A DNA stretch of 64,000 nt from Basidiobolus meristosporus CBS 931.73 (GCA_002104905.1 MCFE01000045.1:124001-188000); one strand, 5' to 3'; positions 48,961 through 64,000 are shown, counted from the stretch's first letter. Numbers and translations are program-made. Notes: a model not told the origin generated them from the sequence alone.

Positions 48961-49375
48961 TGTAGCGACCGACTAAATCAATTATATAAACTTTGCCGGT
49001 TGCTGAGCCAAGCTCACTCGCTCCTACTTTATCTATCTGTTTTTTCTTTTTCTGTTACCGCATCTTTTTTTGATATTTTTGAACTCAGGGCCATTGGTAC
49101 TTTTCCATTGTTCTATACTTATCTTCCACTTACAACTCAGCACAACTTATACCTATCTTGATATCTCTACCTTGGCGTTACTCTATTCTATTTTGAAAGC
49201 TATACAGTCTAGTATACACCACACTTCCCGATATTTCCTGCAAGTTTCCTGATGAACTGTATTGCGGATTGAGTGAACGAACGACCTATTTTCTACGAAT
49301 CCTCTTCTCCCTGATTACCCCTATTCTCTATTCTACTCATAGACAAATATTCCCTTGGTCTTCTAACCAACAAAC

Positions 49376-52169
49376 ATGTCTGAGCAACCCATGCAGATCA
49401 CGGAGGATCCTTCTCCCTCTATACCTTCAAATAATATCCCTCCCACCGAGCTTCACTTGAATTTCTCCTCACAGGAAACGCAAACTATCGCTAGTGCGGA
49501 AAACTTGTTTACAAATATGTCCCAAGACGCCATAAACCAGGCTTTTCTCAATCAACAGCTGGCCTCTCAACAGGAGCTCAACAACCTCCTTGCTGGCTCG
49601 TCCATGCTATCTGAAGGCATGATGCTGATTGATACACCCACCCTACCCTCACAAGAGATGCTGAGTCCTTCTAAAGTAAACCTTCACAATGCTAACCTAG
49701 AGAGCCTTGTTGTTTCGGGAGAGTCGACGCCCAGCGGTGGGCTGACCCCACAGGAGCAAGTGATGTCCTCCATGATGCAAATCCCCTCACACGGGGGTTT
49801 CCACACGGAGGTCCCCAATCTTGTGATGGCGAATAGCATGATATCTCCTACCGTACAGGAGCAGCAGTTCTTCGAAAACATGCTTACCGAGGCTAGCACG
49901 GGAACAATCGTATCGAACCCTCAAAATATGTTAGTAGGCGAGGGTATGCCTCTTGAACCACCCAGAAGCGTCCCCTCCATGGGCCCGATACACCCGACCT
50001 CGGGCACACAAATGTCAACCATGTTCCCGGATAATGGTAACATGATGAGCTTCGATATGGGTCTTTCACAAGCGCCACCCAAGCAACACGCCTTACGTGC
50101 AAACCGGCCGGCCCACCTTCGTCATGGCTATAGCAAATCGGTTTCCATGTTCACCCCTCCAAACCAACCGAGACCCTCGACCAGCACTCAGTATGTTGCG
50201 AGTAATCTTCAACCGATGCCCAACTCGCAGATTGCACCCACCATGCCCTCCGAGCGGATTCCACCTTTGTTCCAGAAACAAATGGTTGAAAACAGCCAGA
50301 TGCTTCATGCGATGCGTAAAAAAATGGGTCACCGGAGGCAGTATTCTGCACCGGAGCTGAAGTATTCGGGATTTCCTAGAAGCCCCGAGAAACAGCTGCT
50401 CCGGCAAACCACGGAGGGGCAAATGCTGAGACAGCGTGGGCTTATGCAAATGACGCCCATGAAACAAATGGCGCCCCATGAGTTACACGGGCTCAGCCCG
50501 GAGCAGATTGAGGCTTTGTCTTTACACTCTCATGGCGAGCCAGACCCGAAACCACTTAAAATACTAGAATACACGGCGGATGGCTACGGCATACTCCGAC
50601 CTAATAGCACAAACATGGCGAATCCCATGCAGGATGTGAAATGTGAGGAGCCTGAACCTCTTCATAAGCAGAGTTCTGTGGATGACATTTCTGCTAGCGA
50701 CAAGGTGAGTTCACTGGACAACTTAACCCGGGAGGAGCTGATCAAGAGGCTCCGGAATGTGGAGAGCGAGCTGGCCAAAACCAAGAATTCGCCCACGAAA
50801 TCCCCGAATTTGAAGGTGGAGACATCGGTCAGTCCTTTCGGAGAGACTGGATCTGAGCAGGGTGACGAAAGTAAGTCTAGGATCACAGATTGGTTCGCTT
50901 TGTGGTCCATTACTAACGAGGCCCATGTAGCTGGAACCGGGGATTCCGTCAGTCCAGTTGGCGCCCACTCCCAAACGCACCTACAAGCGACACCAGAGGA
51001 TAAACTGGTCGATGATGACGATGATGATGACGACGAGCCAGAAGACGATGAGGACTCGAAAGACGAGGAGAAGTCCGAAAAATCCCAGTCGTTCGATTGT
51101 CTCTGGGGTGACTGCTCAAGATCATTCCCGGCACTTGATGTTTTGATCTCGCATATTGGCCAGGAGCATATCGGAAGCGGGAAGGTAAGCAGGAGTCGCA
51201 ACTGACAGGCATCTATGGGTTGCAGTCTAAATTTGTCGCATCATTTCCTTAGGCTTCTTACAAATGTGAATGGCAAGGTTGCCCGCGGAATCAAAAGCCG
51301 TTCACCAAACGCCACAAGATGTACAATCACTTGCGAACCCACACTGGGGAGAGACCGTTCCAATGCCCTGTTGCAGGTACTTTCATATTCGGACCATTGT
51401 TTCTCTTTGAGTGGCTATTGATGAATCCTCCGTAGATTGTGGCAAACGATTCTCCAGACCCGACTCTCTGGCAACTCATGTTAAAACCCACTCCAACGTC
51501 AGACCATACATATGCCCCGTCCCAGGCTGTGGAAAAGCATACTACCATTCGCGCTCTCTACGCAAGCATATCAAAAGCCACGAGATGACACGCCCTCTCC
51601 AGATATTCTCCCAGAACATCCCTGGGGTGAGCCCACAAAATATGATCGACCTAAACAACCATCAGCTACTTGGGGCCAGCCAGCTAGGGATGACTCAAGG
51701 GATCAAGTATCACCATTACCAGCCGGACTCCTCGACATTCTCCACTCCAAAGCCTGGGGAAGAGATCCCCGCAATCAACAACGCACAGCCATCTGCTGCA
51801 CCTAGTGGAGGACATGGGCCAGCCATGGCCAGCTCCAACCTGAACACAAATGTGCCCAACGACTTCCCCATATCACCAGTGGATGTTTCCAACCTTCAGG
51901 GGACAGCGGCGATGATCGAGCCGCCTGTCCTTCAGTCTCATCAATTTGCCGATGACGACGCAAGAAGACTAGAGCCGGCCATCATGGCTACTCCTGGCTC
52001 CCTTACGTCGGAAATGTTAGACCAGCTGATTCAACAAGTAACTCCCCCGATACCTTCATCACACCCCACTACCCCGTCTGGTGAAGGGCTTGGAGCATCT
52101 CCTTTCATTCCTTCGACAGGATTCTCCGCCCAAGCCATTCCTACCATACCGACCACACAAACTCAGTAA
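49376..52169 (+). CDS. C2H2 zinc-finger transcription factor with four GLI/ZIC-like fingers (tandem CWCH2 pair), two introns
   Basis: FDCLWGDCSRSFPALDVLISHIGQEH / YKCEWQGCPRNQKPFTKRHKMYNHLRTHTGERP / DCGKRFSRPDSLATHVKTH / CPVPGCGKAYYHSRSLRKHIKSH; Met/Gln/Pro-rich N-terminus and an acidic tract. Confidence 0.92.
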
Positions 52170-52930
52170 GCTTCGTTGGCAGCAAGATCGGTTGAATTCA
52201 GCCATCATCGACCCCATGTATATAACTCCAAACAAAAGCAAAAACCCTTTTTGTCCGCTCAAAATGTGTTTTAGACAATCGGAGCCATGGTGCGAATTCC
52301 AAGCCAGCCAGAACCTATCTTTGCTTCCACCCCAAAATATAGAGGATCGCCGTTCGCTTTCACCCCGGACGACCAGCGCGAAGTAGAACTCCCAGCCGCT
52401 TCCCGCTTCCGTCGATTTTCCCATGTACAAAATTGAAATCATCGTTGCTTCCAGCTAACCTTGATACGCTTGACATCTCTTAAAACTATACAATGCACTC
52501 TATCCCACCAATCGGTACCGCCTGGTTAATGTATTCACTACGTATTTATTTCCAAGTGCTACATACCCCCTCCCCTCAATCTTTTGCAAACCCACTAACC
52601 TTATAATAAAAAACCCGCCAGAACAACGCGGTGCAGTTGTTTCTATTCCTAGAAATCCCTTTACCGTATCACATGATCTCTCAAATGTTGCTCACCCGAC
52701 CCTCTATCCCCCTATCCCCCTATCCCGTGCGAATGGAATAGGGAGCCAACCTCTGGTCGCCGGATAAACGATGAGGAAGGGGCAGGGGAAGCAACAATAT
52801 TATAGCCAATCGCTCGGGTGAATCTTTTGGCCAGAAGTAGTCATGGTAGTGCTTTGAGAAGAGTGACTATTATTGATTCATTTTGAGCCGCAACCAATGG
52901 AGAAAGGGGGGTTGACAAATAAGGACGGTA

Positions 52931-53961
52931 TCAAAGTGGTATAAGTACAAGTTGTTCTCCTTCGGCGCGGAAATGCCTGCTGATGGGATGTTCCATCTGT
53001 TTGGTGCTGATAGGTACGGTCTGTTGACGATCTTTGTTATATCGGGCGACCTTGAAATTGGTCGGAACATTGTCGATTTCCTAGATGATCGAGGGTGAGT
53101 GGGTGTTGCGTGGATCGGAGCATCGATGGCTGTAAGGGATATTACCTCACGAATCATCTCCACCGCTTTCGAAACACTCGCGCTGGGTGGAATGAAGATG
53201 GCGCCAAGTACCGTATGGGAATTTTGGGATTCGAGGCTAATCAATAATTCCTTGACCTCAGAGTTGGCTAAACGAATTGAATTAGAGGTGGGGTCGAGTG
53301 GGAAAAGCGCTATCGTGGGGTGGGCGTTACTTGGTTCGGTCGATACGGGCTGGCTGGGAGGGACGGGGACGCTTCATTGCTCGGCTGAGGTTTGTCTTCT
53401 TTTGTAGAGAAGGCCTGCTCTAACTTCTCAAATGGGAGCTTTACTCTGGGCTCCACCACATCATCTGGAATCGACCATAGTTTTCCAAGATCCGGAGAAG
53501 TGATATAGTTGGGAACAAAGCTCGGCTCATTGGAAGTGGTCTCGGTTTCTGGCTGCTCTTTTACCTCCACTTGAAAAGTAAACACCCATTTAGTATCGAA
53601 CTCAAGCCGGGTCAACATAATCCATTTCCACTAACATCCAAATGCCTCGCGGACCGTATTGGTTGTGGCCAAATCAGCAGCAGTTTGGCCCTTGTTGTTT
53701 TTCAAGGTGGGATCGGCTTCGTTGGTGAGAAGCAACTTGACAATCGTTGCATGGCCACGGTGCGCAGCCCAGTGGAGGGGTGACCTATATGGCGCGGGCT
53801 TTGAGTATTTGCTCTCGTGGTCCAATTCGCGAATGGACTTACCAGCCGTTGATCTTATTGACCGAGTTGACGTTCACCCCATTACGAATGTAGAGATAGA
53901 CGGCCTTGAAGTTACCAATAGCCGCCATCTCTCTAAGAGATTCCTCACGCTCGTCTAACAT
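52931..53961 (-). CDS. Ankyrin-repeat protein (ANKRD40-like), multi-exon
   Basis: MLDEREESLREMAAIGNFKAV..GVNVNSVNKINGW/SPLHWAAHRGHATIVKLLL..ADPTLKNNKGQTAADL; FVPNYITSP; C-terminal ELLVR-type block. Confidence 0.82.
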
Positions 53962-54423
53962 GGCCCGAAAGAAGAAATAAAAATTTCGAAAGAAACGGGT
54001 GCCGGTTCGGTGGTTATAATATTCGTATCCATGTCTCGACAAATCATTTTCCTGGTTTAATAAGAGGAGATTTATGCAGGAAAAGAAGCAATGTGGTAAT
54101 TGGTAAAGACCGGGCACCAAAGCAATTTTCATCTCGGCCATCCTTATGCATAAATGTGCTCGCCTATGATTAATTTCAATCCCATTGATTGTTGGCTTTG
54201 ACCAAATAACCTAGATTTGTTTATGGTTTGGAAAATCGGAAAATCGGAAAAATGGAAACGGGAGCCGTGATGTTTGTTGTGAAAGTCACTAGGTTACGGT
54301 GCTGTGGTACAAAATGAAGTTGATAAATACGGGCTTGGTCAAAGAGCATACACCCAGTCTCCTCTTGTATCATATTTAATTCACCAAGGATACTTCTCTT
54401 GTAATAGTAGTGTATACTCTCAG

Positions 54424-55695
54424 ATGGTAAACTTAAATAGGAAAAGTGTCGTCAAAGTCGCCGCTCGGTTACGCCCTAACGAACTACCAGCGGGGTCGCA
54501 ACTTCCATATGAAGTTGTAGAGCCCAACACAATCATACTGAAAGAGCAGAAGATCGCGAGAGGCGACTCCATTGAAAAAAAGCACTCGTTCACTTTCAAC
54601 CAAGTGCTTCAAGAATCCGCAACACAAGAGCAAGTGTACGCCACAACCGTGAAGCCTATGGTAGACGCATGGATAAACCAGGGAAAACACGCAGCAGTGT
54701 TCGCTTACGGATTTACGGGTACTGGAAAGAGTCATAGTTTATTTGGAACAGAGGAGCAGCCAGGTCTCGTTGTTTTGGCGGCTCAAGAGTTGTTGGATAG
54801 AGTAGATACCACTTCGGGGGTATCATTGCGGGTTTCGATGTATGAAATTGCCGGGGATAGTTGTTTCGACCTTCTAGCCGAAAAGAACAGACTGAAGGTC
54901 CGTACTGACGTCCACGGAAACATTCATCTTCGCCAAGAAGGAGGCGGTTCTTTGTCCAGGCATGTTGTGACTTCCATGAGCCAATTTCTCTCATTGTGGA
55001 CAAGTGCTATGAAGGCCCGTCGTGTTGGATCCTCGACAGTTCACGATGCCTCGTCCCGTTCGCATGGTATTGTAGATATGCAAGTAATCTCTGATGAGCT
55101 TGTCGAAGCAGAGAACCGAATCTTGTTCAGTGAGAAGGAGCTGATTCGACTTAGCAATGAAAAAGACGATATTCTGAAGGCACGCATCAAGGAGGCATAT
55201 GAAAAAGAAGGACCAGAAGCACTGGCTCCTGGGACGGCATTGGCAGAAGAAATGACACAACTAGGTGTGCCATACGAAGAGGCATCCAGAGCTTTGGATG
55301 AGGAGCGCCAGGCCTATTTAACACTACTCAGCGAGGCGCCTGCTGTTCAACAAGGCGGTTTTTCATTTATCGATATGGCAGGTAACGATTGGGAAAAAGC
55401 AACAGCAACACAGACGACCCTAGCCAGGGCCGAGCATGCTGCCATCAATTCCTCTCTTCTTGCAGTCAAAGAGTGTTTCCGTGCACTAGCCACTGTGCCT
55501 ACACCTGCTCGCATTCCATTCCGCAATTCGCCATTAACCCAGGTTTTAAAGCGACATTTTGCCCCCGGATCATTACTTCTAATGTTGGCAACATTAACGC
55601 TTCCGGTGACTTCTGATACAGAGGCCAACCAAACATATGTAAGACAGAGTCTAAACACACTGTCGTATGCCAAATTAGTTCAGAATAAAAAGTGA
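54424..55695 (+). CDS. Divergent intronless kinesin consisting of a motor domain only (423 aa)
   Basis: VKVAARLRP; FTFNQV; P-loop AYGFTGTGKSHSL; switch I SSRSHG; switch II variant FIDMAGND; INSSLLAVKECFRAL; IPFRNSPLTQVLK; SLNTLSYAK followed by a stop. Confidence 0.88.
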   Translation: MVNLNRKSVVKVAARLRPNELPAGSQLPYEVVEPNTIILKEQKIARGDSIEKKHSFTFNQVLQESATQEQVYATTVKPMVDAWINQGKHAAVFAYGFTGTGKSHSLFGTEEQPGLVVLAAQELLDRVDTTSGVSLRVSMYEIAGDSCFDLLAEKNRLKVRTDVHGNIHLRQEGGGSLSRHVVTSMSQFLSLWTSAMKARRVGSSTVHDASSRSHGIVDMQVISDELVEAENRILFSEKELIRLSNEKDDILKARIKEAYEKEGPEALAPGTALAEEMTQLGVPYEEASRALDEERQAYLTLLSEAPAVQQGGFSFIDMAGNDWEKATATQTTLARAEHAAINSSLLAVKECFRALATVPTPARIPFRNSPLTQVLKRHFAPGSLLLMLATLTLPVTSDTEANQTYVRQSLNTLSYAKLVQNKK

Positions 55696-55801
55696 CAAGT
55701 GTGGCTCAGAGATGATGCTACAGTACAAAAACCAACATGATTGTGGTTGACAAACTGTAAGGTTTATTGACACCGAGCAAACTTGCTAACAAATAGCCTT
55801 A

Positions 55802-58434
55802 TTAACTGATAGAGGGCTTCATCAGCTCTCGCTTGCAGTGCTTGTAGAGCTCGGAGAAGCGAATATGTAATAAAATGGTACCAGCAAACAGGTACCACTT
55901 CCAGTCGATATTATATTGCTTGAAACCAACGGTATTAACTATACATTGGGTGAACATAAGATTCCTGCCAACTAAACCAAACATGAATGGGCTTACTTGG
56001 GAAAATCTACAGAAGAACAAGAACCATGGACCAAACAAGAGTTTTGGATCTGAAGGTTCTTTTGAGCCTGGTGGTAGACCATTCTGTGTTGCGCAGACTT
56101 CTATTATTGATGCCTTGCGCGTAAAACAGAAGAATCAGCGTTACCAGCACGGTGCTACGTGCACGATAAAGTCCTTTACAACCGTCGCTATACTCATTAT
56201 TGCAATTCAGTGCTTGCACACCGTCAGCCAACACTATAATGAACGAAGCAACGAAGATTGCTCCTAATTCCAACCCATAGACAAACGTATCTAATAGTGA
56301 TTCAAAAGAAAATATGCTTTTCTTTGGCGATCTCGGGGGCTCGATCATTATAGTCTCGCTGGCCTCTTGAACCCCCCGCTCTGCCGCCGGAGGAGTGTCG
56401 ACAAAAAACGTGAAAAGAATCTGTATAGGACTCGGTGGGAATACTACCATGCATGAAGGCAGAATTTCTATTGCAGAATCAGTTCCAAATTGTAAATTAG
56501 TGCGTACAGTGCACTACTAATCTTGAGTATCCTGTAATGCGTCGCTTCTCTAATGCGCTGATAGTGATCGCTAAGTTATCGTGTGTTAAATGATATCGCG
56601 ATCCATTCTTTACATGCATGCCAACATCGGTCATGGTTGAAACATGCAAGTTCTTTTCATCTTTGACGCAAGATGTGAACTTTTCCAGGATGTCGCTAGA
56701 ATTTTTGATATCTTGGCAAAGAGGTAAAATTGCCTCTGTTGCGCCTTTGGTGAACACAACCACGTTTTTGAATAATTGAGACGACATACTACCGACATCC
56801 TCTTGATTGTCGAGCCGAATAGCTGCTCAAGTAGCTGTTGGGAATTTCCCTCCAAGTCGAGTCCGAATTTAAGAGCAAACATCTTCAGTGCAACCTCAGT
56901 GGAGCTTCCGCTAGCAGCTCATTCACCAGATTGATCTTCACGAACAGTTGCCATATTGCAAAGAGCTGAGCGTTGAATAAATTTCTTAAGGTTGAACCCT
57001 AGTTGTTGATAGGAATCTGATTTGCTCACAATAACATGGCTAATTTCTGGCGACGAGCCCAAGCGATAGACCTCCCCTTCTGGCTTCGAGGTTACTGAGT
57101 AGTAGCCTCATATGAATTTGACCAAAACATTCGGGCTTCGGTTAGAGTGTCAGTCTTCTTAAGTGAGGATAGTGGTTTAATTGCAAGGGTTACACAAAGA
57201 AAATATACGTTATCTGAACAGATGTTGGTTACTCCACCTAGGGTCTCCAGTGAGTTTAGTTTTCGTACAATAGCTTTCTTCTCAATCATCTCCTTGCCAC
57301 CAAGGACAAAAATTACAGTTAACATAGTGGTTATTCTAGCCGGTACAGCACATAAACCAGCAGTCATTGCGTACATCCGGACATCGTAGCTGATTGCCAT
57401 TGAACATTAGTGCAACCCTATTGACCCGTTAGAGAAATAAGTAACTTACGTAATATTGAATTTGTTAATTCCCATCACAATAATTGCAGCAATCACCGCG
57501 CTGAGTAGCAAAAACAAGGCCATAAGGTCCAAACTACAAAATCAACTTATTTAGCAATGGTTACTATTGAGGGATCCAGTATGCCCTACCTCTTCTGTAA
57601 GCGAGTTTGACCATGGTGCTAGCCTGTGTGATTGTTTTAGCAATCTTACCAACCTCAGTATTCATCCCAGTGGCTATTACTATGCCATTGGTCCGGCCTT
57701 TGCAGATGATGGTCGAGGAATATGCTATATTGCAACTATCTCCTATTGGTAATATAGTTTCTTTACACGGAACACCTAGCCTTCGGGAGACTTGGTTAGC
57801 CCGCTCATCAAATCTCCCTCTTAATATAAGTCTTAACCAACCTTCTGCCAACGTTCTCGGATTCACCAGAAAGAAGTGCTTCATCCACCTCAAAGTTGGA
57901 CCCATCAAATAATAGAATATTAGCGGCAATTGCATCACCCTCTTGAATCAATAGAATGCCCCCTGGGACCAATTCCCGACCTATTATTATCAGTTCTTTG
58001 CCGTCTCGGATGACACTAGTTGTGGGTGAGGCCATACTATGGAGCACCTTCATTGTTTGCTCTACTTGATACATTTGATGAACTTCTAGAAACGAATTCA
58101 GAAGAGTAATCGCAAGGACTAGGGAGCCTAATATGCAATCTTTCTGTACAAAAGACAAAATCTACAAATGCAGTTAGAAGACATCACAGTCTGATTTGAT
58201 ATCAATTTTTTACACTGTTACAGCGAGAAAGATATAGTTGATGGCATGTTTGAGTTGGTGTGATAGAAGGATATGCCACTTAGTATCACTAGCTCCGTCC
58301 AACTCATTGAGGCCGTATTGTTGCCATTTCTTGTGCATCTCTGAGCTACTTAACCCTGTCTCGATATCTGTATAGAGCATTTGAATCACCGTGTTGATAT
58401 TTAGTGAATGACATATTTCTGTTTTCGATGTCAT
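55802..58434 (-). pseudogene. ENA-type (P2D) Na+/K+-exporting P-type ATPase pseudogene
   Basis: Recognisable blocks: GLSSSE..YGLNEL; VIRDG..ELVPG; FEVDEALLSGES; GIVIATGMNTEVGKI; AIVRKLNSLETLGGVTNICSD..KTDTLT; VFTKGATE; IEPPRSPKKSIF. There are several stops and frameshifts, the DKTGT motif is broken, and the TGD/GDGVND region is missing. Confidence 0.85.
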
Positions 58435-58791
58435 TTAGCTGATTAGTTTATATACAAAGGCATACTCCACGATGACCACACCAGCTTCCCAATTTCAACT
58501 AAACAAACTTCCAGTGGCTCTCAGTACTTATCATATTGTGTAACCCAATGCCTATTCAAATCCGAAAAAAGGTCGAGCCCTGCCAAACTAGGTTACCAAA
58601 CAGCAAACCTTAAACGGTCATTGGAAAATCAAGTTTATAGTGTCCATTGAAGCCATTGCAATACTGCTTTGACTTTCATAATTTGATCTTGCCCTACACC
58701 CAGATACTTCATATGCGGCATATTTTACAGGCTTTCAGATGCTAAATACATCATCCAGTTGTTACTGACATCACCTATTCTTAATAATAAT

Positions 58792-60705: not shown

Positions 60706-61611
60706 TTATAATCGTTTGGCAATAACGATGGAATTCACCACTTCATTATATGGATGAACGACAAGGACAGGCTCGAAACCTGTCAACATCTCTGTTTCAA
60801 TTTCCGGGTACAATAGGGTCCTGAGGCTGTGAGCACTTCGAAGAACCAAGTAAGAGCCGGGTCTCATGGCTCTCCATAGCTGTTTGGTGATTTCTTGTTT
60901 TTCGGCTTGAGCAAGTCCTACCAGTGCAGCCAGATATACAATATCATGACACTTCAGGTCTTGTATCTTACCAACATCCTGATGATGAAAGATCAGGTTG
61001 CTTTGGACATCTGGCAATTGTTCTACAAGCGCCGCACTTACGGTCAGCGCCTCCAAATCAATATCATAGTTATCAATGACGAAGGAAGTCACCTCCGAGC
61101 TTCCAATCTGGGTCAATAGTTCTCTTGCCAAACAAATCGAAGTTAACGGAAGTGGTCCCGAGCCCAAAAACGCAATCTTTTCGGGAGATTGATGTAAAAC
61201 GGAACGGATGGCATTGAGTTCCATCTTCGCCAGGGAAACATAATTTTGATAATACGGAAAACGCAGTAGCTCCAACGCGGCTTCTTCGGGCTTCTTGACA
61301 ATGTGGGCAGCCCATGTTGCCTCCAACCGGAACTCACCGATGGCACAGAGCTGTCGAAAGTGCTCAGTAATCGCTATGATCTGCCTATCACGGAGAATGG
61401 CCTCCAGATCATAGCGCGGTAGTGTTTTTATGCAAATACTAACCAGCTCACTGAAGGCGGCGTTAATTTCGGGGCAAGGATCCAAAGCGGATGCTTTGGC
61501 CAATGTTTGATATATGCTGTAAATCCGATTCCTGGTTTCCTTTGCTCTTACGAATCCGTTTTGTGCACAAAAATCTGAGGGCTCAGTAGGAACAATGGAG
61601 TGGCTTAGCAT
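60706..61611 (-). CDS. NAS: Nicotianamine synthase (plant/fungal type), intronless, 301 aa
   Basis: INAAFSELV; EFRLEATWA; FPYYQNYVSLAKMEL; IAFLGSGPLPLTS; YDIDLEA; DIVYLAALVG; LVLRSAHSLRTLLYP; VHPYNEVVNSIVIAKR. The motif order matches the NAS family. Confidence 0.94.
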   Translation of the reverse strand: MLSHSIVPTEPSDFCAQNGFVRAKETRNRIYSIYQTLAKASALDPCPEINAAFSELVSICIKTLPRYDLEAILRDRQIIAITEHFRQLCAIGEFRLEATWAAHIVKKPEEAALELLRFPYYQNYVSLAKMELNAIRSVLHQSPEKIAFLGSGPLPLTSICLARELLTQIGSSEVTSFVIDNYDIDLEALTVSAALVEQLPDVQSNLIFHHQDVGKIQDLKCHDIVYLAALVGLAQAEKQEITKQLWRAMRPGSYLVLRSAHSLRTLLYPEIETEMLTGFEPVLVVHPYNEVVNSIVIAKRL

Positions 61612-62229
61612 GTCGAGAGAAGATTGGATAGTATGTAATCTGTGGGCATATCGAGTAGAAGATAGCCTTTATATACTGCAAAAAATGTTATGGCAAAGCT
61701 CTGCTGCATCTTTGACAATCAAATGGGGTTATTCAACGTAGAAACCCCATTACTTCTCTTGCTGCACCATCTACCTCCCACCAATATGACTAATTCTTGT
61801 TATCCGAGTCTTGGCCAATAATTTTGAACATGGTTTGAGTACCCTATAGGGCATCAAACTAGACTAGTTTTGCACAACAAACACGATGATGACCGATAAG
61901 GTGCTCAGATAACAGTCGCACTCTAACCTCTAGGGTACGCATCGAATCAAATGCTCCACAAAGTACCACAATGGTGGGATCGCCCGTATATTATCTAACT
62001 ATGGCCAACGTTACCTGAGTCATAATGTCATTATCCAAGAGATTGATGGCTGATAAGCTTAATCTTTCTAACCTCCAGGGTACGCATCAACTTTAACTCA
62101 ACCAAAGCCCCAGGAAATATTGCAACACAACAACCCCAGAATGTTGATGCTTCCGCAGTCCCTCATTTTGTTCACAAGTATTTAAGCCGTATTATTGAAG
62201 GATTTCCCAGGGCTTAAACCACCGTCAAT
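61612..62229. promoter_or_regulatory. Bidirectional promoter of NAS and the MFS gene, with repeated ZRE-like and GATA motifs
   Basis: TCTAACCTC(T/C)AGGGTACGCATC at 61922-61943 and 62067-62088, a related inverted copy at about 61836-61851, and HGATAR sites at about 61894, 61907, 61991 (reverse) and 62051. Confidence 0.6.
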
Positions 62230-63934
62230 ATGTCACCCGAGAGAGATGATAGCATGAAGATAACGCCGCTCCCTACAAGACAACTGATTGTATTGTGCTT
62301 GGTAAGGCTTGCCGAACCAATCAACTATACTATTCTTTTTCCATTCATGTATAGGGTAAGTTGCATACTTGTGCCCATTCGGACTACTTTTCTAACCCTC
62401 GTAATGGATCAGATGGTTAAGTGGATGAAGGTAGGCGAAAGCGAGGAGGATGTAAGCTCATATGCGGGCCTGATAGCGGCGTCGTTTGCGATTGCCCAGT
62501 TTTTCAGTGGTACATGGGTGGTCTCTGACTCAGATATGTGCGGGCGGTGCTAACCTTGTGCTAAATATATTCAGGTATTCCTTGGGGCTGGTTGTCGGAT
62601 CGCATCGGAAGAAAGCCCGTGATTCTGATGGGCCTACTAGGAAGTACAGTTGGAATCATAATGTTTGGTTTAAGTCAGAGTTTTGCCATGGCTATAATCA
62701 GTCGCTCTTTGGCCGGGATACTCAACGGGAATATTGGTGTCATCAAATCATTGCTAGCCGAGATTACTGATAAATCTAATAGAGCGAAAGCTTTTTCATT
62801 GCTCCCACTAGTCTGGGGAGTGGGAAGTGTAGTTGGTCCCCTGCTAGGTGGTCTATTGTCAGAGCCAGCTACTCAATATCCGTCGGTATTCGGTAACAAT
62901 TCTGTGATGATCAAGTTTCCTTATCTTTTGCCTTGCTTGATTGGTTCCTGCATTAGCCTGGCAGGGTCCATCTTCGGTTTCTTTTTCCTAGAAGAAACAT
63001 TGAAAAGTAAAGTACAAGAGAAGAACCAAAAGAATGCGCAAGCAGGACCACATGCTTCCCAGGAAAAATCCTCACAGACAACTGGCGAATGTGAAAAAGG
63101 CTCAGAAATCATTGAGGTGGCAAATGCGAAATTGGATACTCACACCCCTGAATCTAAGCCATCGCTCAGATCCTCGCTTACCAAGCCTGTACATATAGTG
63201 GTGCTCTCGTATGTACTATTTTCCCTTCAAAATGTTACATGGGACGAGCTATACAACCTTTGGACTGCTGCTCCCATTGAACACTATGGGCTTGGATTAA
63301 GCCAGTCGAAGATCAGTATCACATTAGCTATAGTGGGCATTTTAACGCCAGTGGTACAGCTTATGATTTACCCACCGCTTCAGCGACGTTTTGGGGATCT
63401 ATCCTGTTACCGAGTTGTGCTATTTGTGTACATCCCATTTTATATATTGCAACCTTTTGTAGCGGATCTGGCTCGGCATGGTGAGCAGTTTAGAGACCAT
63501 AACACAAGTACTTACAGACTTGTCCAAGTGGGTGTCTGGGCAGGGGTTGGGCTCTGCCTTATTACCAAAGTAATTTGCTCACCCATCTGCTTTACTGCTA
63601 CATCGATATTGCTTACAGATGTCTGTGAGAATAACGAGGTTTTAGGAACAGTGAATGGGTAAATAGTCCTACTAATCATTTACACCTGAATTTACACCTG
63701 AATATATATATCCTGACAACTTATTGTAGATACTCGCAAGCCGTGGTTTCGCTTACGAGAGCGGCTGGGCCAGCCATGGGTGGCGCTTTACTTACCCTGT
63801 CAATCAAGTCTTCTCTACCCTTTCCATTAAATAGTCATTTAGTTTGGAATGTATTATCAGTCATTGCTATTATTACTTGGATTGAATCATTCTGGGTAAA
63901 GTCAGTTTTGAGTAAGAAGGATAATTCACATTGA
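62230..63934 (+). CDS. MFS transporter, ZIF1/ZIFL/TOM1-like (YCR023C-like) subfamily, 3 or more introns
   Basis: TPLPTRQLIVLCLVRLAEPINYTILFPFMY; YAGLIAASFAIAQF; PWGWLSDRIGRKPVILMG; LNGNIGVIKSLLAEITDKSNRAKAFS; GPLLGGLLSEPA; FPYLLPC; FFLEET; LGTVNG..VSLTRAAGPAMGG. Confidence 0.9.
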
Positions 63935-64000
63935 AATAAAACCCACGTATTAAGAGACATAATTTGCACTGAAATATGTTACACGGAGCATAAAATGAGA

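Follow-up and report, generated by a model that had tools for sequence, protein, structure and literature searches.

A nicotianamine synthase gene, a ZIF-like transporter gene and a YSL-like transporter gene in a conserved cluster of Basidiobolus: a candidate fungal module for making, exporting and recovering nicotianamine

A 64,000-nucleotide stretch of the genome of the gut and soil fungus Basidiobolus meristosporus CBS 931.73 (GCA_002104905.1, contig MCFE01000045.1; hereafter the window, whose positions are used below) carries near its end an intact gene for nicotianamine synthase (NAS) and an intact gene for a transporter of the major facilitator superfamily (MFS), transcribed divergently from a common intergenic region and followed, just past the window, by a gene for a transporter of the OPT family. 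Because the closest characterised relatives of the three products are three parts of the plant nicotianamine (NA) system, namely NAS, ZIF1/ZIFL and YS1/YSL, we consider it probable, with some reserve, that this locus is a module for making NA, exporting it and taking its metal complex back up. The retention of the trio in old copies in two species suggests a plant-like metal-handling system in a fungus.

A preliminary description of the window, made from the sequence alone, had proposed a compact synthesis-plus-export unit in which NAS and a ZIF1/TOM1/ENA1-type MFS transporter stand head-to-head with about 620 bp between their starts. Both genes are indeed intact: NAS is one open reading frame (ORF) of 301 aa and the MFS gene consists of four exons encoding 503 aa, with exactly 618 bp from ATG to ATG. 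Inspection of the sequence beyond 64 kb revealed the OPT gene, which lies on the same strand as the MFS gene and begins 236 bp outside the window, so that 301 bp separate the MFS stop from the OPT ATG. The proposed pair stands, in that it is conserved, and the unit has to be enlarged from two genes to three, as follows (L001 denotes the locus on the window's contig).

60706-61611, minus strand: nicotianamine synthase (NAS) gene (P0121), from an ORF and its PF03059 match
61612-62229, no strand: shared (bidirectional) promoter region, 618 bp, NAS ATG to MFS ATG
62230-63934, plus strand: gene for a ZIF-like DHA1-type MFS antiporter, 503 aa (P0001; PF07690); exons 62230-62355, 62413-62509, 62575-63658 and 63730-63934
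63935-64000, plus strand: first part of the 301-bp MFS-OPT spacer, the OPT start lying at window-equivalent position 64236
L001 5278-7376, minus strand in the locus and plus in the window: gene for a YSL-like OPT transporter, about 645 aa (PF03169)

The NAS protein matches PF03059 at E=6e-70 (236 bits against a cut-off of 27.1) over profile positions 10-271 of 276. Its core-NAS domain extends to residue 300 of 301, leaving no room for the C-terminal extension typical of seed-plant NAS. In an alignment with archaeal MtNAS (3fpe), E97 and Y124 correspond to E81 and Y107, for which we take the catalytic roles to be those given by Dreyfus et al. 2009; in 13 NAS from bacteria, fungi and plants neither the columns of this Glu and Tyr nor GSGPLP vary, and the motif GSGPLPLT is invariant across the bacterial, fungal and plant homologues. 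Over 90% of its length the protein shares 40-48% identity with NAS from chytrids, ascomycetes and moss, and 36-39% with NAS from seed plants (36-42% with plant NAS overall). In the tree the Basidiobolus NAS are monophyletic (support 98/100); their stem branch is rather long, at 1.34 changes per column, and they fall with the sampled fungal, moss and seed-plant NAS, opposite Actinomycetospora and a long-branched Polychytrium sequence, across a weak split (79/83).

These features correspond to class III NAS, defined as the core NAS without the autoinhibitory C-terminal extension of seed plants (PMC10248798). The enzymes of Neurospora crassa and other fungi in this class likewise consist of the core only, at about 300 aa, and form NA in vitro; the same study had already annotated NAS in Zoopagomycota and reported one intron shared by fungal and moss NAS, whereas the Basidiobolus gene is intronless. 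Plain NA is the parsimonious product, given that fungal enzymes of class III form NA in vitro and that the gene has no modifying enzyme linked to it. The absence of NAAT, DMAS and opine dehydrogenase had been remarked on in the preliminary description, and we likewise saw none among the called genes and Pfam families within 10 kb of NAS, the ORFs of at least 220 aa in 1-49000, several ORFs in 49000-58500, and the two ORFs (gag and reverse transcriptase) in the 5 kb beyond OPT.

The introns of the MFS gene are of GT..AG type with CTAAC-type branch sites, and the spliced 503-aa product is identical, letter for letter, to the NCBI protein P0001; exon 3 alone matches PF07690 (MFS_1) at E=1.4e-25. 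The protein carries the MFS signature GWLSDRIGRK at residue 79 and the antiporter signature (motif C) SLLPLVWGVGSVVGPLLGG at residue 149, to be compared with the patterns G-x3-D-[RK]-x-G-R-[RK] and S-x8-G-x3-G-P-x2-G-G reported for ZIFL proteins (PMC8747725); both are generic for DHA1 antiporters and hence only weakly diagnostic of ZIF/ZIFL membership. Its AlphaFold model, built with 36 homologues (pLDDT 87.5), is all-helical with MFS-type topology. When this model was compared by Foldseek with the Swiss-Prot models, the leading eight matches (22-30% identity) were Aspergillus fumigatus mfsB (30%), Arabidopsis ZIFL2 (7e-23, 29%), ZIF1 (2e-21, 27%) and ZIFL1 (2e-20, 26%), yeast YCR023C (5e-20, 22%), psiT2 of two Psilocybe species (26-28%) and azaK (24%), and the next group, MdtG at 1e-14 with 16-18% identity, followed only after a gap of about four orders of magnitude in E-value. 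The protein is thus ranked with the ZIF-like group and not with unrelated drug/H+ antiporters; a Rhizoctonia homologue is also annotated through its best Swiss-Prot match, ZIFL2. The best 120 MFS matches listed were all fungal or unnamed, and the MFS tree holds fungal members only. Within that tree the NAS-linked proteins form a clade of their own (100/100), separate from the other Basidiobolus ZIF-like paralogs, and motif C is intact in all five members. The ZIF1/TOM1/ENA1-type label consequently holds at the level of the subfamily and does not extend to the substrate: membership alone does not identify NA as the cargo, because ZIF-like pumps also serve unrelated clusters, those of psiT2 and azaK.

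For the OPT protein the only match in the PDB was barley YS1, an iron-phytosiderophore transporter (7wsr, E=3e-13). Over its full length it matches TIGR00733 (73 bits) and not the PT-clade model TIGR00727, and its alignment with a rice YSL shows 26% identity over 534 aa. In a Swiss-Prot fold ranking for the modelled B. ranarum orthologue (pLDDT 77), yeast YGL114W came first, followed by 27 plant YS1/YSL proteins (3e-20 to 2e-15), then one bacterial OPT, with the first PT-clade OPT only at 8e-11; AtYSL6 was fourth, and ZmYS1, OsYSL15 and the AtYSLs all stood above the PT-clade OPTs. In a tree without a PT-clade outgroup, the Basidiobolus OPTs form one clade (100/100) inside a clade of early-diverging fungi. 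Because that tree places them nearer to bacterial OPTs than to the very long-branched rice YSL, the protein is best called YSL-like, along with YGL114W, rather than a YSL proper.

The deposited OPT gene model calls for a separate remark. Compared with P0241, the deposited P0242 omits two short in-frame stretches that are kept both in the uninterrupted ORF and in the model from a duplicate contig (described at the end), and one of the two contains GETDINP, a conserved segment with an aligned counterpart in barley YS1; the deposited annotation is probably over-spliced.

MFS genes are so common that one NAS-MFS adjacency by itself would be weak evidence. The divergent pair was found at four loci with unrelated flanks: in B. 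meristosporus on contig 45 (the window; L001) and contig 20 (L002), and in its relative B. ranarum on two contigs (L003 and L004), where the locus tags are consecutive (K7432_004750 for OPT, K7432_004751 for MFS and K7432_004752 for NAS; K7432_001641 for MFS and K7432_001642 for NAS). The OPT gene lies downstream of the MFS gene in three of the four, L004 being the exception, and the genes outside the module all differ from locus to locus. Between copies the synonymous sites are saturated (pS 0.70-0.83) while pN is 0.13-0.20, which places the NAS and MFS copies under purifying selection. Because synonymous sites are saturated and all flanks have been replaced, the order and orientation of the genes have outlived a complete turnover of neutral sequence and neighbourhood, and their co-localisation has been kept beyond what shared ancestry of the neighbourhood explains. 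The NAS, MFS and OPT trees fit duplication of the module as a unit, although they leave the branching order open for NAS and for the MFS proteins of L001, L002 and L003; from the identity values and a shared 22-bp promoter element, L001 and L003 are probably orthologous. The fifth member of the MFS clade, also from B. meristosporus (L010:10001-11565), is sister to the MFS of L004; no NAS or OPT gene occurs within 10 kb upstream of it or within the roughly 6 kb downstream to the contig end, and it looks like a decaying copy of the module.

The shared promoter region contains the following elements.

61836-61850, no strand: partial inverted copy of the repeat core, TGAGTACCCTATAGG, 15 nt, 87% complementary
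61896-61912, plus strand: ATAAGGT-N5-GATAA (TTATC-N5-ACCTTAT on the other strand), from pattern count and conservation
61922-61943, plus strand: first copy of a 22-bp direct repeat, TCTAACCTCTAGGGTACGCATC; core ACC-N5-GGT
62067-62088, plus strand: second copy of this repeat (22 bp), at a distance of 145 bp from the first; the MFS ATG follows about 150 bp downstream

The pattern ATAAGGT-N5-GATAA has one site in the 64-kb window, whereas 100 shuffles gave none. Of the 92 loci compared, only L001, L002 and L003 contain it (the other 89 do not), each with a single site that lies in the NAS-MFS spacer and points the same way. Because the pattern was derived from the very sequences counted, these figures overstate its significance; a three-way match in the same orientation over 12 specified bases, in otherwise saturated sequence, still makes the element credible as a footprint. 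One reading takes it for a paired GATA site, of the kind used by the iron-responsive factors SreA/Fep1 or the nitrogen factor AreA; another takes it for a half-site of Zap1/ZafA type, AAGGT, joined to GATAA. The 10-mer AGGGTACGCA occurs in the window only at the two repeat sites (0.02 expected). The 22-bp element has one copy in L003, at a similar distance from the MFS ATG, and variants of ACC-N5-GGT are confined, among the four promoters, to L001 and L003; the promoters of these two loci align poorly, apart from some islands and the TATA-like blocks close to either gene. The L004 promoter contains neither the ATAAGGT-N5-GATAA pattern nor the 22-bp element, the four promoters together have no 8-mer and a single 7-mer in common, and upstream of the OPT genes the same elements were not found, only a TATA-like 9-mer being shared.

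We do not endorse a canonical zinc-responsive element (ZRE) in this region: the exact yeast ZRE, whose consensus we take to be ACCTTNAAGGT, and the A. fumigatus CAAGGT motif are both absent from all four promoters. As the exact yeast ZRE is missing, zinc regulation of the shared promoter is a lead only. A C2H2 zinc-finger gene at 49376-52169 (plus strand), about 9 kb from NAS, shows a sub-threshold Zap1_zf1 match (24.8 bits against a cut-off of 27.2) in addition to classical C2H2 fingers, and may encode a Zap1/ZafA-like zinc-responsive regulator. Its proximity may be due to chance, since no Zap1-like C2H2 gene was found near the other three clusters.

From these components we propose the following scheme. 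NAS would condense three aminobutyrate units derived from S-adenosylmethionine into NA, as its strong homology indicates. The ZIF-like H+ antiporter, judging from its family, its antiporter motif and its conserved linkage, would carry NA from the cytosol, most probably through the plasma membrane to the outside of the cell. The YSL-like OPT, by family and linkage, would return the metal-NA complex (Zn, Fe, Cu or Ni) to the cytosol. Since NAS and the MFS gene share a 618-bp promoter with conserved elements, the two would be expected to be co-induced under metal limitation. The sequencing runs listed for the 3.2-kb stretch and for NAS by itself were DNA runs of the source sample, with no RNA run among them.

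Beyond Basidiobolus, the chytrid Gaertneriomyces semiglobifer (L005:7481-14418) has NAS divergent with a gene for a membrane protein of the ThrE/PRM10 family (PF06738), and an OPT gene homologous to that of Basidiobolus after NAS; in Maublancomyces gigas (Pezizales; L006:6932-11154) NAS is divergent with a ThrE gene homologous to the Gaertneriomyces one. NAS in these fungi thus also faces an exporter-family membrane protein, although the partner is ThrE/PRM10 and not MFS and the gene order differs from that of Basidiobolus. The ThrE-family protein may be another kind of NA exporter, common to two phyla; we found no published description of this arrangement. Linkage of NAS to a transporter gene is therefore recurrent but lineage-specific, with MFS in Basidiobolus and ThrE elsewhere, and its recurrence gives mild support to a role for these linked transporters in moving NA out of the cytosol. 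Gaertneriomyces, with a separate NAS-OPT linkage in a different arrangement, lends independent support to a link between NAS and OPT.

In Bombardia bombarda (Sordariales; L009:6089-10941) NAS is divergent with a gene for a 704-aa ATP-grasp protein, which could modify NA or a related amino-acid compound.

Several observations weigh against an NA module in Basidiobolus, or against the form of it that we favour. Among the fungi sampled, the NAS-MFS pairing was seen only in Basidiobolus: no transporter adjoins NAS in Cokeromyces, in Powellomyces or, unlike in Basidiobolus, at the ascomycete loci examined (Bombardia and Coleophoma), and ThrE takes the place of MFS in the one chytrid and the one Pezizales fungus. 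The four Basidiobolus loci amount to one ancestral arrangement and its retention, not to four independent events, and one lineage is decaying, L004 being without OPT and its B. meristosporus counterpart L010 reduced to MFS alone. Fungi have a large ZIF-like MFS subfamily, to which, besides psiT2 and azaK, the 'multidrug' pump mfsB belongs. The OPT clade is widespread in Mortierellomycota and Mucorales, yet no NAS of Mortierellomycota appears among the 120 NAS matches listed, so that the ancestral substrate of this OPT need not be metal-NA. The sequence does not tell a plasma-membrane from a vacuolar site of action, and NA in N. crassa is viewed as intracellular, according to a work cited in a preprint.

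That Basidiobolus secretes NA as a true extracellular metallophore and re-imports the metal complex through the YSL-like OPT, in a compact 'Strategy II' whose duplicates with diverged promoters are possibly tuned to different metals (Zn and Fe, for example), is put forward tentatively, as conceivable but short of likely. The same module could instead be intracellular, with the MFS protein loading NA into the vacuole as ZIF1 does, for the trapping or buffering of Zn and other metals, and the OPT releasing metal-NA from it, so that NA would never be secreted; this we hold to be rather unlikely. Relatives such as TOM1, ENA1 and most YSLs are generally known to act at the plasma membrane, and the linkage of synthesis, exporter and importer in one locus is typical of secreted metallophore systems. 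On the vacuolar side, the reviewed proteins closest to the MFS protein include ZIF1 and ZIFL1, ZIF1 being a tonoplast protein that raises vacuolar NA (PMC8747725); AtYSL6, for which like AtYSL4 vacuolar release has been proposed, stands fourth among the fold matches of the OPT; and NA in fungi has until now been regarded as a chelator inside the cell, induced when Zn is withheld (Trampczynska 2006, as represented in a preprint, which also credits that study with the induction of the N. crassa NAS gene by Zn deficiency). We favour secretion and re-uptake because synthesis, exporter and importer in one locus are usual for secreted metallophore systems, and our preference is modest because ZIF1 itself is vacuolar and sequence does not decide.

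It is a good deal less probable that the linkage is without function, a chance adjacency copied by segmental duplication whose MFS and OPT products carry unrelated substrates such as drugs, amines or peptides. MFS genes are, as is generally known, among the most abundant in fungal genomes, and more than 2500 homologues of this one were found at E<=1e-5 among 8000 candidates; all the Basidiobolus copies come from one origin, the pairing is absent from most other fungi sampled, and one lineage has lost OPT and, in B. meristosporus, NAS as well. A chance neighbourhood is nonetheless hard to reconcile with adjacency, order and orientation that persist despite saturated synonymous sites and replaced flanks, with a cis-element conserved in three of the shared promoters, or with the NAS-OPT linkage of a chytrid in a different arrangement; moreover, both transporters belong to exactly the families that handle NA and metal-NA in plants, which is unlikely for random neighbours. 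Least probable of all is a product that resembles NA without being NA, built from another starter amino acid or from fewer aminobutyrate units and handled by the same transporters: NAS-like enzymes of archaea and bacteria do make thermoNA, xNA or yNA (PMC10248798) and the Basidiobolus stem branch is fairly long, but the enzyme groups, if across a weak split, with fungal, moss and seed-plant NAS, has the identity to eukaryotic NAS given above, and is linked in none of the four loci to an opine dehydrogenase or other tailoring enzyme.

The proposed module of synthesis, export and re-uptake invites comparison with systems already known. The plant NA/phytosiderophore system employs the same three protein families (NAS; the ZIF1/ZIFL/TOM1/ENA1 group of MFS; YS1/YSL) to the same logic, in which the chelator is made, moved out of the cytosol and taken up as the metal complex. 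The plant genes are dispersed, whereas those of Basidiobolus form a contiguous trio with a shared promoter; the Basidiobolus OPT sits in a fungal clade nearer to bacterial OPTs than to the long-branched YSL of rice; and as neither NAAT nor DMAS is linked to the fungal genes, a mugineic-acid step is not expected.

The bacterial cnt operons (cntKLM-cntA-F-cntE in Staphylococcus, cntOLMI in Pseudomonas, cnt in Yersinia) likewise join an enzyme of the NAS family to an MFS-type exporter and an importer. They import by ABC or TonB systems, whereas the candidate importer here is an OPT, and the Basidiobolus enzyme falls in the eukaryotic NAS group. No CntM-type opine dehydrogenase or CntK racemase was found within 10 kb of NAS at the four Basidiobolus loci, and because the opine dehydrogenase is absent, the locus would be cnt-like in its workings without being a member of the cnt operons. 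We propose it, in logic, as a fungal counterpart both of grass Strategy II (NAS, TOM1/ENA1, YS1) and of these operons. The clusters for psilocybin (psiT2) and an azaphilone (azaK) place pumps of the same MFS subfamily, 24-28% identical to the Basidiobolus protein, inside a locus for small-molecule biosynthesis; their chemistry is other and, unlike in Basidiobolus, the pump is not paired with an importer. For fungal class III NAS, that of N. crassa included, the literature searched describes no transporter partner.

Transfer of the cluster ready-made from bacteria was considered and rejected, since 80 bacterial and archaeal loci with NAS-family genes (Actinomycetospora, Jiangella, Acidimicrobiales, candidate phyla radiation (CPR) bacteria and others) have no related OPT. 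Searches of these loci by default tblastn with the MFS, the OPT, a bacterial OPT and the rice YSL gave no matches; with filters off, the MFS query gave four weak ones (E 3e-8 to 9e-6).

NA is central to the Fe, Zn and Cu nutrition of plants and to crop biofortification, while to our knowledge almost nothing is known of its use and movement in fungi. The locus yields directly testable candidates for fungal NA export and uptake, and it bears on whether the partnership of synthesis and transport predates plants. In the full-text literature searched we found no description of a fungal NAS-transporter cluster, although an earlier one is possible; here it takes the form of a candidate locus for metallophore synthesis, export and uptake, assembled in a fungus from plant-type parts. 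YSLs are said to occur only in plants (review, PMC4965479), a statement that a YSL-like fungal OPT tied to NAS would qualify. Plants, in turn, have been argued to have acquired NAS from fungi (PMC12454661; bioRxiv 10.64898/2026.08.27.747422). If NA is indeed a secreted metallophore in Basidiobolus, the combination of NA synthesis, ZIF-type export and YSL-type uptake would not be a plant invention, and the coupling would also be present, whether through common descent or through convergence, in the kingdom from which plants are proposed to have received NAS. Such a system would also be relevant to the ecology of the fungus, because Basidiobolus lives in vertebrate guts and occasionally infects humans, and these hosts withhold zinc and iron.

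Further members of the NAS family came to light in the searches. Two metagenomic proteins of 438-448 aa (P0143 and P0161) have a NAS domain fused to a GNAT acetyltransferase domain (PF13508/PF00583), which hints at N-acetylated NA-like products in uncultured organisms. Homologues of the Actinomycetospora NAS-family protein (L013-L092; 29-100% identity) are widespread in Actinomycetospora, Jiangella, Phytoactinopolyspora, Promicromonospora and Acidimicrobiales, and occur also in CPR bacteria (Saccharibacteria and Parcubacteria) and in one Woesearchaeota genome.

Around the module itself, the called gene adjoining NAS (57092-58434, minus strand) encodes 378 aa with only the Cation_ATPase_N and E1-E2 actuator domains, that is, the N-terminal part of a P2-type cation ATPase; as no phosphorylation/hydrolase domain was called, it is probably truncated or a pseudogene. 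Directly downstream of OPT lie retrotransposon gag and reverse-transcriptase ORFs (L001:1081-4565). The OPT region is repeated at 99% identity on contig MCFE01001026.1 (19.7 kb; L011), which carries extra retroelement copies and represents, in this region, either a haplotig or an assembly duplicate.

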